Assembly (NCBI RefSeq): GCF_001194135.2
Contig: NC_069001.1
Coordinates: forward strand, 22,437,613 to 22,501,612
Reading direction: 5' to 3'
DNA: 64,000 nucleotides
Origin: Octopus bimaculoides
Taxonomy: Eukaryota
Part shown: positions 6,565-43,687 of the stretch, one piece after another
Position numbering within the stretch: the stretch's first letter is position 1
Layout of the letters: each line of letters opens with the position of its first letter
The notes under the pieces: model-generated
Seen by the model: the letters and a program-made list of their open reading frames with translations, nothing else
What the model was told of the DNA's origin: nothing
The model's database searches: none
Made by a program: the position numbers and the translations under genes

Positions 6565-6726
6565 TATTCATTTATTTATTTATTATGAATTCAGAATTGA
6601 TTTCTCAATTGAAGAATACATTGAATTTAGAATAACAAAATCCTATACAACGTATTTTGCTTTTTATTTCCAATATATAAAGAACAATTTAATTCCCGAG
6701 CAGCCGGGTTCCTCTGCTAGTATATA

Positions 6727-7644
6727 TTGAGTCATCACACAAAATAAGTGTTAAAAATCTGCATTATTATGCGGTTTTTAACACATATTTTTTCAAAATT
6801 TATATAAACAAAGTTATTTTTTCATTAAAGATAAACCCTCTTTCTTTTTCTACAATGCTTTTCCATCTGTCTGGTTGACTTGCAAGACCTCACTTCTAAA
6901 ATTCACTTGTCCGTGACGAAAAATATTCCTCCAGTACAGTTCCAATCTCGTCTACAGAATTCATATTTTTTCCGTCTAAATAATTTTGAAGACTTAAGAA
7001 TAAATGATAATCAGATGGGGCGATGTCCGGCGAATATGGTGGGTGGGGCATTGTCTGCCATTCAAACTGCTCCAACCTTTGGAATGTCATCCTCGCTCTA
7101 TGTGGCCTAGCATTATCCTGATGGAACAACACCTTTCGTCTTGAAACCAAAGATGGTTGTTTTTCTTCTATCGCTGACTTGAATGACAGTTTGAATGACC
7201 AAATCCAAGCTTCCTCAATAGTTACGATGGGATTTTGTTCCATCAGGGTTTGCAGGACGTCCTCGTCGAGCTCAGCAGATCTTCCAGTACGAGGCTGGTC
7301 TTCTAGGCTGTAGTTTCCGGTTCGGAGTTTCTGGAACCACCGTTGACACTGGCTTACGCGTATTGTCCGATCCCCATATACAGCATTAATATTCCTCGCA
7401 CTTTCGTTGTTGCCTTTATAGAACTCATAAAGCAAAATATGCCGAATATGCCCCTTTGTCACTTATATTATAGCTTTGAAAAAATAACTGTGAAAATCGA
7501 ATCGCACTCTTCAAACTTGTATAAGATTAAGGAAAAGGTAAAATTACTACCTGCTTTTATAGCAAGTTGATGCTGGTAGTTTATCCCATCCCTCTCCGAC
7601 TTTTAGTTCATGTACTTAAAAAGCTATATTATCTATGGGATGAC

Positions 7645-39831: not shown

Positions 39832-40280
39832 AAGGCGGCGAGCTGGCAGAAACATTAGCACGCCAGGCGAAATGCTTAGCAGTATTTCGTCTGTCTTTGT
39901 GTTCTGAGTTCAAATTCCGCCGAGGTCGACTTTGCCTTTCATCTTTTTGAGGTTGATAAATTAAGTACCAGTTGCGTACTGGGGTTGATCTCAGCGACCG
40001 GCCCCCTCCCCCAAAATTTCGGGCCTTGTACATTGAGTAGAAAAGAATTACTATATATAAGGCGGCGACAGGCAGAAACATTAGCACACTGGGTGAAATG
40101 TTTAGCGGTATTTCGTCCGTCTTCATGTTCTGAGTTCAAATTCCACCGAGGACAACTTTGCCATTCATCCTTTCAGGGTTGATAAATTAAGTACAAGTTG
40201 CATACTGGGGTCGAAACAATCGACAGACCCCCCCCCCCATCACCAAAATTTCGGACTTTGTACCTAGATTAGAAAAGAAT
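39832..40280 (+). mobile_element. Two tandem tRNA-derived SINEs with Nin/Deu-like domain (octopus OR-like family)
   Basis: Each starts AAGGCGGCGA, has a B-box-like GAGTTCAAATTCC and the core GACTTTGCCTTTCATCCTTT..GATAAATTAAGTAC. Other copies: ~20440-20620(+), 35640-35870(-), 47000-47220(-), 47328-47760(+, dimeric), 47980-48130(-), 50465-50690(+), 60345-60530(+). Confidence 0.85.
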
Positions 40281-40351
40281 TTATATATATATGAGGGTAT
40301 TATTGTTTATAATAATATCAGTGACTTAGCATGCGTAAAAAAAGCCATAAC

Positions 40352-40640
40352 GGTAAAAAATTATCAATTAATAATTAAGGATACGAACAAGCAAATGAAA
40401 AAAAATCCTAGAACCCCGTACCAATTATAAAAATAATCGAAAATTGAAAAGCTAGACGTACCCGTATCAGCGTGATTTCGAACTTTGAGAAAAACAGAGT
40501 TTATCTTCAGCGAGTCAAAATTTGAAATCACGGTGATACGAGTATGTCTAGCTTTTTCAATTTTCGATTATTTTCATCATTGGTATGGGTTTTAGAATTT
40601 CTATTCACTTGTCCACTTTCTAATTGATTGGCCTTTACTA
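40352..40640. repeat. Long imperfect palindrome (foldback MITE-like), arms ~115-135 bp, 26-nt loop
   Basis: 40430-40488 is the near reverse complement of 40515-40574 (AAAATAATCGAAAATTGAAAAGCTAGAC..); weaker pairing extends outward. Confidence 0.9.
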
Positions 40641-40735
40641 TAAGTAGGTTATCTCCCTTGGCTAGGCGGTGCTCCATGTAGACAATTAAACTTCCGCAGA
40701 CTATCCACGCTATTGTTATTGTTTTACGTCTTATC

Positions 40736-41014
40736 ATGGATATAAAGCAGCTCAATGATTCAGCTATCGAAGTATTTACTGTGCCTGAGTTAAAGAAATA
40801 TTTAAGATTATATGGACAGTATGTTACTGGAAGAAAGGCGGACTTGATTGAAAGGTTGAAAGGTATAAAAATTCTGTCAATGAAGAATGTCAACAAAGTA
40901 AATTCATCGGACGATAAGTCTGAAGTATCGGACGATACTTCAGACAGGAATAAGCAGAAGCTTATAACTCCTCTCAGTGAAGTATTGCCTTATCCCAGTC
41001 TGCTTCCAGCATAG
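40736..41014 (+). CDS. SAP-domain ORF (92 aa), probably truncated transposon accessory gene
   Basis: FTVPELKKYLRLYGQYVTGRKADLIERLK matches the SAP consensus (L+V.ELK..L...GL...G.KA.LI.RL). Confidence 0.75.
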   Translation: MDIKQLNDSAIEVFTVPELKKYLRLYGQYVTGRKADLIERLKGIKILSMKNVNKVNSSDDKSEVSDDTSDRNKQKLITPLSEVLPYPSLLPA

Positions 41015-41759
41015 CCTTCAGCAACCATTCACTGATTTGGCCATGAGCATGATGAGGTGTAGAAGAGGTAGGGACAGTCACACTATAAAGTGTAATAATT
41101 AGAGGAATATTAGATTCAATGCTGTAAATTTATTATTTAATCAAACAAACACACACACATATATATATACANNNNNNNNNNNNNNNNNNNNNNNNNNNNN
41201 NNNNNNNNNNNNNNNNNNNNNNNNNNNNNNNNNNNNNNNNNNNNNNNNNNNNNNNNNNNNNNNNNNNNNNNNNNNNNNNNNNNNNNNNNNNNNNNNNNNN
41301 NNNNNNNNNNNNNNNNNNNNNNNNNNNNNNNNNNNNNNNNNNNNNNNNNNNNNNNNNNNNNNNNNNNNNNNNNNNNNNNNNNNNNNNNNNNNNNNNNNNN
41401 NNNNNNNNNNNNNNNNNNNNNNNNNNNNNNNNNNNNNNNNNNNNNNNNNNNNNNNNNNNNNNNNNNNNNNNNNNNNNNNNNNNNNNNNNNNNNNNNNNNN
41501 NNNNNNNNNNNNNNNNNNNNNNNNNNNNNNNNNNNNNNNNNNNNNNNNNNNNNNNNNNNNNNNNNNNNNNNNNNNNNNNNNNNNNNNNNNNNNNNNNNNN
41601 NNNNNNNNNNNNNNNNNNNNNNNNNNNNNNNNNNNNNNNNNNNNNNNNNNNNNNNNNNNNNNNNNNNNNNNNNNNNNNNNNNNNNNNNNNNNNNNNNNNN
41701 NNNNNNNNNNNNNNNNNNNNNNNNNNNNNNNNNNNNNNNNNNNNNNNNNNNNNNNNNNN

Positions 41760-42017
41760 AGATACTTTGTTTGGAAAAACGGATGGCAAGGGGTGATCTT
41801 TCGATGGTCCATTAAAATTGACGAAATGCTGGGAACATATTTGGCTATTTGCAGTGTAAACAAAGTCTTTCCTCACAAGTCTCGATCTCTGAATCCAAAT
41901 AAGACGAATAGCTACGTTTGCAGGATATGTATGTAGTGAAATAACTTTGCCGTCTACATTCTTCCCTCTATAGTGGCTGCATATACAGCAGTATTTGCGT
42001 GATTTCTTCGGAGACAT
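41760..42017 (-). CDS. THAP (C2CH) zinc-finger ORF, runs into assembly gap; probably the transposase N-terminus
   Basis: MSPKKSRKYCCICSHY..SLHTYP.N...R..WI...R..F...ICSQHF...P.PSVF = THAP pattern C-X2-C..P..W..C-S-X-H-F..P.P. Confidence 0.85.
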
Positions 42018-43687
42018 ATTAACCAGTCAGTACAGTATGTGAGTCGTTAGTCTGCGGAAGTTAAAGCAAGTCACTGAGCATGCATACATGTCATACGGGA
42101 GAGTTTCAATCAGGGGTGGATAACAAGCTTATAGGAACCCCCTATAACAGAAACGTATATTGCAACAGTTACAAAAAAATAAAAAGAAGTGTAAAACCGA
42201 TAACTATATAATCCAACCAAAATATCATATGTTCTCGATTCTGTTAATGTCTATCTCTCTTATTTTGAAAATACACTTCTCTTTGGTCCTGACTCATTTG
42301 TTCTATCCTTTGCTGATTTCTTTCCCTCCTATGCCGTAGGATACGTTCCCTCTCCGCTTGGTTTATTTCGCTTCTTTTCTGTCTCAACCACGCGCGATTT
42401 TGATTCCTTATTTCCTCAGCTGTTACTCGCACAACCGTTCTCTCCTACGCTGATGCTCTCGTGCTGCATCCCTCATGCGGTTAACCATATTTTGTTAAAA
42501 CAATAAATCTCCAAAATGATTCAAAGTGTTTCAAATGAAAAACATATACGAATGTATTAGACAGTTTTTGTTTAAAAAGTGAAAATATTTCTGAAATACT
42601 CACCTAATATGCAAGGACACAGTATGTAGGGTACGCTAATTAATTATATTGTAGGGAAGTAAAAAGTAAAGGGAAAAAATAAAATTAATATTTTTGATTT
42701 TGTTCGACTCTATGAATTCAATTTTTTTAAAGCTTTTGTCAATTGCTTGATACAAGAAAAACAGAAATTGGAAAAGTCCCGACCAAAACAGAAAAATTCT
42801 AACTTTACAAAAAATATAGAAAGAGAAAGTTGCGCTTATTTCCCTCACGCGACACTTGTTGTTACACACACACGCACACATACTTTTATATATGTGTGTG
42901 TGTGTGTGTGTCTTTTAGTTTTTGTTTACTTATACACATCAACAAATGAGCCAATTGTGTGGTTGTTCAATTTGCTAGAAATAACAGCCAAATCTCTCTC
43001 ATACTATGCTCTTGTTAGTATTAAAGAAAGGGAAGAATAGAATTGATATTTTTGACTTTGTTCGGCTCTATGAATTCAATTTTTTTTTTAATGCTTTCGT
43101 CCATTACTTGATACAAGAAAAAAGAAATTGGAAAAATCCTGACCAAAACAGAGAAATTGTAACTTAACAAAAAATATAGAAAGACAAAGAAAAGGTTACA
43201 TTCGGAAGCCAAAATTTCTTTTAGCTGAGGTGTAATTTTATAGTAAAAACAAATTCAAAGTTTAAATTTCGGAACATAAGACTTAACATGTTATTTGTTA
43301 TATGACCGAATTCAAATGGGTAGAAGACCTAAAACAAATGTGTGTGTCTGTGTGGGTGTCAATATCAGTTCAGTCGTAGAAAAGAATTCAAATACCTATC
43401 AGCCACTCTCTCTCACTCTCTTTCTCTCTCACTTTCCCTCTTCCTTGCTCAACATGCCAAATTTAAGTATCTTAATTTTCTCATTAAGGTCGTCGCCGCT
43501 TCGGTGGCCCAGTAGGCATAGGTGTTGAGAAGTAGTAGTGCAACACATATGTGGTGGCTTCAAATGTCTTCCTGAAATTACAAGAGATCAAGTTAAAAAC
43601 TTTTTATTTAACCAACATTTCTTTCAACAATTTTTCCTCTTAGGAGTGACACACGCATCAGGTACATACAAAAAATAAATTGGCGTA

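Follow-up and report, generated by a model that had tools for sequence, protein, structure and literature searches.

Why do two short open reading frames (ORFs), one encoding a SAP domain and the other a THAP domain, face each other on opposite strands of Octopus bimaculoides DNA, each behind the same inverted 15-nt motif? The first-pass annotation of the window (the whole 64,000-nt stretch that was analysed) had proposed an internally deleted two-gene DNA transposon, with ISL2EU and Kolobok as models, and had considered that it might be a regulator or an undescribed cephalopod family. Our analysis indicates that window positions 40629-42143 are very probably one copy of a multi-copy ISL2EU-type (PIF/Harbinger-related, 'PHIS') cut-and-paste DNA transposon of this octopus.

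Architecture and bounds of the window copy

The window copy displays only the outer parts of an element, a left arm with part of a SAP gene and a right arm with a THAP exon, on the two sides of an assembly gap:

40627..40628, no strand: left target-site duplication AT, read from the sequence
40629..40666, + strand: left terminal block of an imperfect terminal inverted repeat (TIR), beginning TGGCCTTTACTATAAGTAGGTTATCTCCCTTGG; matches both the right end of this copy and the relatives' termini in alignments
40689..40703, + strand: left subterminal motif AACTTCCGCAGACTA; its core, ACTTCCG, lies 61 nt from the element end, and the 15-mer ends 32 nt before the ATG
40736..41014, + strand: SAP ORF, a 92-codon N-terminal remnant of the accessory gene (Pfam SAP, E = 1.1e-7)
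41015..41171, no strand: stretch without detectable family homology; its last part (41142-41171) is a (CA)n(TA)n microsatellite next to the gap
41172..41759, no strand: assembly gap of 588 N, its length an estimate; the SWIM-like, YqaJ, HTH and DDE regions would fall here if present
41760..42017, - strand: first transposase exon, a THAP zinc finger of 86 codons without a stop (Pfam THAP, E = 1.2e-6)
42048..42062, - strand: right subterminal motif AACTTCCGCAGACTA; core 82 nt from the element end, 15-mer ending 30 nt before the ATG
42078..42109, - strand: THAP-arm-specific blocks, GCATGC and TTGAAACTCTCCC (the GGAACTCTYC block), conserved in the THAP arms of L001, L002, L003, L004 and L008
42110..42143, - strand: right terminal block of the imperfect TIR (reverse complement AGGGGGTTCCTATAAGCTTGTTATCCACCCCTGA), placed by alignment to the left end and to relatives
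42144..42145, no strand: right target-site duplication AT, read from the sequence

The SAP ORF, starting at 40736 (+), and the THAP ORF, starting at 42017 (-), are convergent as annotated, with profile matches to Pfam SAP and THAP, respectively, and both domains are free of stops, as had been remarked. In particular, the SAP domain occupies residues 14-42 of the 92-aa ORF, which is 46% identical to residues 4-83 of a 565-aa S. woodiana protein (P0022; E = 1.4e-16). The family homology of the ORF stops at 41005, and a TAG stop follows at 41012-41014. Past 41014, no coding continuation in any frame significantly matched the family, and a 'PFTD' resemblance spotted there by eye was unsupported by homology search. 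The accessory gene of the window thus keeps its SAP N-terminus, while the remainder lies in the gap or is deleted.

In the right arm, the C2CH signature of the THAP domain is intact by direct reading (C10, C13, C61 and H64), together with P32, W41, F65 and a PSVFP box; the N-terminal THAP domain that characterizes the ISL2EU transposase is therefore present in the window exon. The exon shares 72% identity with its counterpart in the S. woodiana THAP-HTH-DDE gene and enters the gap about four codons short of the exon end seen in paralogues, of which P0014 and P0017 read on as ...PNKVFKISV. The GCATGC of this arm is a remnant of GCGCATGCG, seen in relatives, a block that is presumably NRF1-like.

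Because both ORFs run into the gap from opposite strands, neither needs a reading frame that continues through it. A 294-aa ORF listed across the gap is spurious and arises because N was translated as X. No other family copy and no DDE or YqaJ remnant was found in the 64-kb window; the DDE region of the window copy itself would sit in the gap. The annotated internal deletion, with loss of both catalytic domains, is no more than a possibility, because the gap, whose length is an estimate, falls exactly where these domains would be.

The outer limits of the copy, 40629 and 42143, lie beyond those annotated (40652 and 42102). Specifically, inverted similarity between the arms reaches both positions (TGGCCTTTACTATAAG.GGTTATC versus AGGGGGTTCCTATAAG..GTTATC), and the Logan contig L001 begins at the base equivalent to 40629. 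Cross-species alignment of nine arms gives the terminal consensus AG.CCTTTCCAATAAG..GTTATC.CCC. The two terminal blocks of the window copy have diverged, with about 10 matches in the first 16 positions; its ends begin with TGG and AGG, and those of relatives begin with AGG, AGC, AGT, AGA, TGT or TCG. GG is found at positions 2-3 of some ends, and since ISL2EU repeats only 'usually' begin with GG, this is not decisive. Aligning arms across species showed that the words TCTCCC and TGCTC, annotated as shared outer words, do not form the homologous pairing: the counterpart of the left TCTCCC is CCACCC in the right GTTATC-NCCC block, and the right TCTCCC is part of the THAP-arm-specific GGAACTCTYC block.

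The dinucleotide AT, the 2-bp duplication of ISL2EU, flanks the window copy at 40627-8 and 42144-5 and adjoins all 16 ends read in the window copy and relatives. No conserved A..T was seen outside the flanking AT at these ends, and no paralogous empty site matching the joined flanks of the window copy was found to prove the duplication. A scan for tRNA and SINE sequences around the locus found nothing.

Two-gene relatives in molluscs

Relatives were compared at seven mollusc loci from bivalves and gastropods: S. woodiana (L003), H. cracherodii (L004), Mercenaria (L005), Gigantopelta (L006), H. rubra (L007), Mya (L008) and Batillaria (L009). At each of these seven loci, a SAP-(SWIM-like)-YqaJ gene and a THAP-HTH_Tnp_4-DDE_Tnp_4 gene are convergent, with the HTH and DDE catalytic region present throughout. 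The genes start 76-132 nt inside a terminus and read inward, and the elements span 4.6-7.7 kb in the five relatives for which both ends are in hand. The S. woodiana transposase matches DDE_Tnp_4 (1e-43), HTH_Tnp_4 (2e-14) and THAP (3e-8), and the termini of its element carry a perfect 19-nt repeat. THAP exons of other lineages are 37-55% identical to the S. woodiana exon. Full-length accessory proteins comprise 550-600 aa; YqaJ was detected in five of the seven full-length relatives scanned (E from 4e-12 to 8e-19), with a weaker, partial match in P0060 (1.7e-8), and the SWIM match in P0022 fell just under the cut-off.

These relatives identify the octopus element as a two-gene transposon of the ISL2EU type, as first proposed, with convergent genes at seven loci and AT at every end read. 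The domains that follow SAP and THAP, left open by the annotation, are YqaJ and DDE_Tnp_4 in the mollusc relatives. The annotation had further considered that SAP and THAP homologues might never be linked elsewhere and might lack the shared motif; instead, they are linked in seven of seven relatives and the motif is conserved. The suggestion of an undescribed cephalopod family is replaced by a lineage found across molluscs.

Alternatively, the sides of the gap could stem from two copies, one contributing its left end and the other its right end, through either an error of scaffolding or a genuine rearrangement. In favour of this are the repetitive family, an assembly with 12 gaps in 64 kb, the divergence of the terminal blocks described above, and AT flanks that, being present at every insertion, are not diagnostic of a single element. 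We nevertheless regard this origin as improbable: orientation, order and arm types exactly match a single element, as seen in all five relatives with both ends, both arms carry the same lineage-specific changes (CTATAAG for CAATAAG, and the identical 15-mer), and the left contig runs out in a microsatellite, where gaps commonly arise.

Octopus paralogues and an improbable domestication

The SAP ORF has paralogues in 13 O. bimaculoides gene models in UniRef (69-95% identity), and the THAP exon has five relatives, namely three O. bimaculoides paralogues (82-94%) and two contigs (66-67%). The paralogues include truncated and chimeric forms, and deleted derivatives of the element are present in the O. 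bimaculoides genome. In particular, the tail of the paralogue P0020 aligns to window positions 42053-42130, linking both ends of the element within the species. Splicing could produce this tail only with a copy-specific acceptor, and a contiguous deletion junction is simpler; the S. woodiana intron lies three codons downstream of the point equivalent to the P0020 junction, not at the junction. An amplified octopus deletion derivative appears, from protein models only, to be without the right-arm motif, which argues against the motif being needed at both ends for mobilisation.

A domesticated SAP and THAP pair, kept as host regulators after loss of the catalytic domains, would account for the lack of stops inside either domain and for the conserved promoter-like motifs. 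However, a copy with 82-94% identity to its paralogues would be expected to keep 86-92 codons intact by chance. A domesticated THAP or SAP host gene is expected to be single-copy, intact and without transposon ends; here the family is multi-copy with truncated and chimeric members, SAP homology breaks off at 41005, ahead of the stop at 41012, transposon termini and the AT duplication are retained, and no orthologous single-copy gene was seen. For these reasons we consider domestication highly improbable; nothing supports a domesticated regulator, and the annotated possibility of one falls away. The window locus and the dozens of short O. bimaculoides models named 'SAP domain-containing' or 'THAP-type domain-containing' are transposon fragments, not host regulators, and should be masked.

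Conservation of the inverted 15-mer

The annotated 15-mer, described as a perfect inverted repeat about 30 nt upstream of each ATG, is exact, with spacers of 32 nt and 30 nt. No further match to AACTTCCGCAGACTA with two or fewer mismatches occurs in the 64 kb, and two matches were obtained in none of 100 shuffles. Within the long, imperfect terminal repeats, the 15-mer represents the inner of the conserved blocks; as a putative control block it recurs close to both ends in all relatives examined, which makes the word real in an otherwise ordinary element. Its core ACTTCCG (CGGAAGT on the other strand), which corresponds to the canonical ETS core, occurs without mismatch in 13 of 16 arms and with one mismatch in the other three, against a chance expectation for a 7-mer on either strand of about 0.013 exact matches per arm. 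The motif that the annotation saw in both arms is thus a conserved subterminal element.

The offsets of the core from the end, 61 and 82 nt, are identical in octopus and Sinanodonta; across arms, the distance from core to ATG (17-53 nt) is less variable than that from core to end (21-92 nt). The 8 nt after the core are identical at 7.2 of 8 positions between the arms of an element, compared with 3.8 of 8 between lineages, a covariation reached by 1 of 120 permutations, and the core-to-terminus distance shows phasing that peaks at 10.5-10.75 nt (Rayleigh p ~0.003); both tests are post hoc and use 5-11 non-independent arms, and the Gigantopelta 'pair' comes from two neighbouring copies. Batillaria keeps the core alone, in flipped orientation and with unlike flanks, which argues against a universal element-specific flank.

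Possible roles of the subterminal block

Judged from sequence comparison, the 15-mer block is best read as a promoter or operator for the two inward-facing genes. Upstream of each gene, the element has no DNA other than the stretch from terminus to ATG, so the promoter of that gene must lie in its arm, and some promoter role of the block is reasonably probable. The block is most likely the core cis-element of each promoter, where a host ETS-family factor would bind, and the symmetry of the arms would lead to matched expression of both genes.

Because the flank covaries between arms and the motif is phased at ~10.5 nt to the terminus, the site may also be recognised by a DNA-binding protein that the element itself encodes, and we give such binding an even chance. 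In the transposase the candidate reader is the THAP or the HTH domain, and in the accessory protein it is the SAP/SWIM-like part; reading by any of these would resemble the internal THAP-binding sites of P elements. That the block combines a promoter role with binding of an element protein is a tentative proposal. Under this proposal, the ETS core of a dual-use operator would fire both promoters and the phased, lineage-specific flank would be read by the element's own THAP/HTH or SAP/SWIM-like protein, an arrangement that is conceivable but rather unlikely. Occupancy by the transposase could then couple or shut off expression of both genes. If true, molluscan ISL2EU elements would share a conserved autoregulatory design that is so far undescribed in this group.

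The same covariation and phasing, together with an arm spacing (61/82) that is unequal yet conserved, would also be expected if the motif were purely a site at which transposase or accessory protein assembles the transposition complex, with no promoter role. Such a site would be like the internal THAP sites of P elements, which provide a precedent, or to the subterminal Myb-protein sites of Harbinger. Several observations speak against it, and we hold it to be unlikely: the 7-nt core is invariant although THAP exons are so divergent from the S. woodiana exon, it equals the canonical ETS core, Batillaria keeps it alone and flipped, the amplified octopus derivative seems to be without the right copy, and its distance to the ATG varies less than its distance to the end. 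The promoter or operator reading is the one that we prefer.

Comparison with known systems

Some Kolobok lineages carry a THAP domain. Kolobok differs in its TTAA duplication and in its DDE family; there is no TTAA at the ends of the octopus element, which has AT flanks, and the relatives' transposase matches DDE_Tnp_4 at 1e-43, which removes the Kolobok option of the annotation.

PIF/Harbinger proper shares a related DDE_Tnp_4 plus HTH transposase and two genes, one of them for an accessory protein, and the Harbinger accessory protein is said, in work of Sinzelle and colleagues from 2008, to bind subterminal sites. It differs in having a 3-bp TWA duplication, a Myb/SANT accessory protein and no THAP domain, whereas the element described here has AT/AT flanks and a SAP-(SWIM-like)-YqaJ accessory protein, and membership was rejected.

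The Drosophila P element resembles the octopus element in the N-terminal THAP domain of its transposase, in the frequency of internally deleted non-autonomous copies and in the unequal spacing of its internal transposase-binding sites (9 versus 21 bp; PMC7776569), to be compared with 61 and 82 nt to the core here. It differs in that it has one gene only, duplicates 8 bp on insertion and encodes a GTP-dependent transposase from a different fold family. The two genes, the 2-bp AT flanks and, in the relatives, the Harbinger-type DDE_Tnp_4 domain exclude the element from the P superfamily.

The closest match is ISL2EU, a group of the PHIS (PIF/Harbinger-ISL2EU-Spy) superfamily (Repbase; Han et al. 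2015, PMC4482050; Han et al. 2014, PMC4122938), which has a THAP-HTH-DDE transposase, a YqaJ second ORF and a 2-bp AT duplication (PMC4482050, PMC4122938). The element shares with it, as judged from its relatives, the THAP + HTH + DDE_Tnp_4 transposase, the YqaJ ORF and a size of several kb, and further the AT duplication and an animal host. It differs in its outermost bases: the first is A or T and the second is G, or C in one arm, compared with the 'usual' GG. Oyster entries of ISL2EU are already in Repbase, and no paper in the literature searched names ISL2EU together with octopus. The role of the YqaJ partner in ISL2EU is still called unknown (PMC4482050), and neither PMC4482050 nor PMC4122938 describes the SAP and SWIM-like modules of the YqaJ protein, a convergent order of the genes or a conserved ETS-like block near the ends. 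The mollusc ISL2EU lineage offers a clean comparative set for how a two-gene DNA transposon coordinates expression with end recognition.

Convergent SAP and THAP reading frames face an assembly gap

The ISL2EU-type copy at 40629–42143 carries two convergent reading frames, which are separated by a gap of 588 N (41172–41759) and preceded by an inverted motif.

40736 to stop at 41012–41014, plus strand: SAP ORF, 92 codons, Pfam SAP E=1.1e-7
ATG at 42017, into the N gap at 41759, minus strand: THAP ORF, 86 codons without a stop, Pfam THAP E=1.2e-6
40689–40703, plus strand, and 42048–42062, minus strand: 15-mer AACTTCCGCAGACTA

The THAP signature (C-X2-C...C-X2-H, the conserved P, W and F, and the PSVFP box) is legible in the window sequence itself. 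Across the 64-kb window the 15-mer has exactly two perfect copies, inverted relative to each other, and two matches are found in 0 of 100 dinucleotide-preserving shuffles, even with two mismatches allowed. Because the ORFs converge and the motif is positioned 32 nt (SAP) and 30 nt (THAP) 5′ of the ATGs, the arrangement described in the first-pass annotation, with each ORF behind the same inverted 15-mer, is confirmed.

A gap-crossing "ORF" of 294 aa was rejected as an artefact of reading N as X in translation. Because the SAP and THAP ORFs are on opposite strands, frame need not be kept through the gap for either of them. A (CA)n(TA)n microsatellite (41142–41171) forms the gap-side end of the left contig and is an ordinary cause of a short-read gap. 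The window contains twelve N gaps (57–991 nt); similar microsatellite runs recur elsewhere in it more than ten times, and two or more of these adjoin other gaps. In order, orientation and arm type, the two gap sides match a single element in every relative for which both ends are in hand.

Full-length relatives in molluscs encode YqaJ and DDE proteins

An exhaustive HMMER search with the gene model P0004 identified relatives of 550–600 aa, in which an N-terminal SAP domain is combined with a YqaJ exonuclease domain (lowest E, 8e-19). In P0022, the 565-aa accessory protein of S. woodiana, a SWIM-type finger scores 17.5 bits, slightly below cut-off, and the UniRef cluster is named 'SWIM-type domain-containing'. 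The hosts of the full-length relatives are all molluscs (Sinanodonta, three species of Haliotis, Mercenaria, Gigantopelta, Mya, Batillaria, Solemya, Mizuhopecten and Ruditapes), and the relatives are multi-copy inside each species. At seven of seven genomic loci, the SAP-YqaJ gene on the plus strand is followed by a convergent minus-strand gene with a THAP exon, HTH_Tnp_4 and DDE_Tnp_4, which answers, for the relatives, the earlier question of what follows SAP and THAP.

In S. woodiana, the element (L003 9901–14464, 4564 bp) is bounded by a terminal inverted repeat of 19 nt without mismatch, and both of its genes are intact; a Pfam scan of its ORFs gives DDE_Tnp_4 at 1e-43, HTH_Tnp_4 at 2e-14 and THAP at 3e-8. 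The other four elements with both ends in hand span 5.5–7.7 kb. The window THAP exon shares 72% identity with its S. woodiana counterpart (42017–41760 versus L003 14346–14056), whereas the SAP ORF is 46% identical to residues 4–83 of the accessory protein; this contrast between octopus and freshwater mussel points to uneven constraint, or possibly to horizontal transfer of the element. In Gigantopelta aegis (L006 ~6690–6810), a second terminal arm of opposite orientation lies beside the THAP gene where the right end should be, pointing to a second copy that is nested, in tandem or rearranged.

Termini and classification

The alignment comprises nine arms, each covering the sequence between the terminus and the ATG; the window and six further sources supplied them. 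The H. rubra, Gigantopelta, Mya and Batillaria arms were read apart from this alignment. The arms have in common a terminal block, AG.CCTTTCCAATAAG..GTTATC.CCC, whose first base in the window is 40629 on the plus strand and 42143 on the minus strand. The bounds first proposed, 40652 and 42102, do enclose sequence of the element, but its true ends are 23 nt and 41 nt further out. Both octopus arms read CTATAAG rather than CAATAAG, a lineage-specific change. AT directly flanks 16 of the 16 ends read, and the Logan contig L001 begins at the equivalent of the element's first base.

By published definition, ISL2EU combines a transposase of THAP-HTH-DDE type with a second ORF for YqaJ, and its insertion duplicates 2 bp, AT (PMC4482050; PMC4122938). 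The window element is an ISL2EU-type transposon, and the two-gene DNA transposon proposed in the first pass was right in outline: the relatives supply the THAP-HTH-DDE and YqaJ genes, and the ends are AT-flanked. The repeats start with A or T and then G (in one arm, C), not with the GG generalised in the paper, a minor difference. Three other assignments were rejected on their defining features: Kolobok on TTAA, P elements on 8 bp and one gene, and Harbinger proper on TWA and a Myb partner. No paper joining ISL2EU and octopus was found in the literature searched, Repbase being outside its scope.

Several other features lie near the element. About 30 nt left of its end, 40408–40597 holds a foldback or MITE-like palindrome, ~190 nt long and near-perfect, with arms of 39–49 nt at 84–90% complementarity and, as single-stranded DNA, a fold of -59 kcal/mol (z = -15.7 versus shuffles). 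Two similar ~50-nt segments (poly-C ... AAAATTTCGG.C.TTGTAC...TAGAAAAGAATT) surround, by eye, a SINE-like stretch at 40000–40290, in which ARAGORN finds no tRNA. Directly right of the element, a 62-codon Arg/Glu/Gln-rich ORF (42244–42432, minus strand; MRVTAEEIRNQNRAWLRQKRSEINQAERERILRHRRERNQ...) is possibly a fragment of another repeat.

The window copy and its octopus paralogues

Similarity to the full-length accessory protein stops at 41005 (...LPYPSLL), with TAG next at 41012, and the 157 nt between the SAP ORF stop and the gap match nothing in the transposon family. The THAP exon is intact as far as the gap. No DDE or YqaJ remnants occur elsewhere within the window. Taking the estimated 588 N as correct, the copy would measure ~1.5 kb, lack the YqaJ and DDE regions, and be a non-autonomous deletion derivative distinct from the amplified SAP...CNC type described below; should the estimate be off, a longer copy is possible.

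The SAP peptide matches 13 O. bimaculoides gene models (69–95% identity) and the THAP peptide five relatives (66–94%; three O. bimaculoides models and two contigs), all matches in these searches being short (52–151 aa). The window element thus belongs to a repeat family in this species. Several gene models translate upstream DNA (P0013, ...IKLPQTIH...; P0014 and P0017, ...VTCFNFRRR...), showing that the motif is kept beside both exon kinds in other copies. In many models, a second coding stretch (...AKQQLRSGIFYHDRHVHSIEYHD...VHSADCNC) is fused to the SAP exon. After CNC, model P0020 continues with SSKSLSMRTCHTGEFQSGVDN, the plus-strand reading of window 42062–42130 in the right terminal region, and therefore the SAP side and right terminus are linked in other octopus copies. 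Evidently, an internally deleted derivative has amplified in O. bimaculoides (models P0003, P0004, P0006, P0007, P0010–12 and P0019–21). Judged from protein models only, it passes from the left arm, ending at the CNC codons, straight into the outermost ~80 nt of the right arm, and has neither the THAP exon nor the right-hand motif.

On the same protein models only, the derivative's junction is the equivalent of window ~42062, where the right 15-mer has its inner boundary, and the S. woodiana intron begins 3 codons past the codons equivalent to the CNC break; both breakpoints fall at landmarks of this kind. P0023, an O. bimaculoides model of 278 aa, is a chimera of SAP and adjoining SWIM-like-region exons, Kazal_2-containing sequence and an acidic tail, and is either a prediction artefact or an exon capture by a host gene.

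Stop-free runs of 86–92 codons are the chance expectation for a copy 82–94% identical to its paralogues. The transposon family has many copies, with paralogues that are truncated or chimeric. Nothing suggests domestication of the locus, and the "possible regulator" of the first-pass annotation is not borne out. The window element is an ordinary transposon fragment.

A subterminal block is conserved in both arms

It had been considered that SAP and THAP homologues elsewhere might never be linked and might lack the shared motif. They are linked at all seven loci, and a core, ACTTCCG, lies between terminal block and ATG in every arm (exact in 13 of 16, one mismatch in 3 of 16), against a chance expectation of about 0.013 exact matches per ~100-nt arm. 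In Batillaria attramentaria (L009 6925–7006 and 14501–14597), the core is flipped in both arms, with CGGAAGT toward the gene; its flanks there are dissimilar between arms, unlike other lineages. In Haliotis cracherodii (L004 11326–11352), the core occurs twice in tandem in the THAP arm, 20 nt apart (AACTTCCGCCGAGTACAGTCAACTTCCGTC).

The 8 nt after the core are near-identical in both arms of one element and different between lineages.

Core flank by lineage
Octopus: CAGACTA[T/A]
Sinanodonta: [G/C]GGGCTAT
H. cracherodii: CCGAGTA[A/C]
H. rubra: GAGATGTT

Flank identity is 7.2/8 within elements versus 3.8/8 for the same arm between lineages, and the true pairing alone among 120 permutations reaches 7.2/8. 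The inter-block DNA is dissimilar, indicating block-wise constraint and not homogenisation of the arms. The core-to-tip distance is 61 nt (SAP arm) and 82 nt (THAP arm) in octopus and Sinanodonta alike, and across 11 arms, which are non-independent, the distances show a period of 10.5–10.75 nt (Rayleigh p about 0.003, post hoc). THAP arms have additional blocks in common, GGAACTCTYC and the palindrome GCGCATGCG.

Possible roles of the subterminal block

Each gene starts 76–132 nt from a terminus and reads inward, and therefore its promoter must lie in the arm. We take CGGAAGT to be the canonical ETS-family core, and GCGCATGCG presumably resembles an NRF1 site. The reading we favour most is that the block serves as a promoter/operator. 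A host-factor promoter element is favoured by a core that is invariant and survives flipped in Batillaria, and by the amplified octopus derivative, which apparently does without the right copy; some promoter role is rather probable. Recognition by an element-encoded protein is favoured by the flank, which covaries arm to arm, and by the helical phasing, and we give such binding an even chance. That the block combines both roles seems doubtful. A conserved, covarying, phased ETS-like subterminal block in both arms, across molluscan elements, is of modest interest. For recognition by an element protein, the P element offers a precedent: the internal sites bound by its THAP transposase are spaced differently at either end (PMC7776569), as the core here lies 61 versus 82 nt from the tips.
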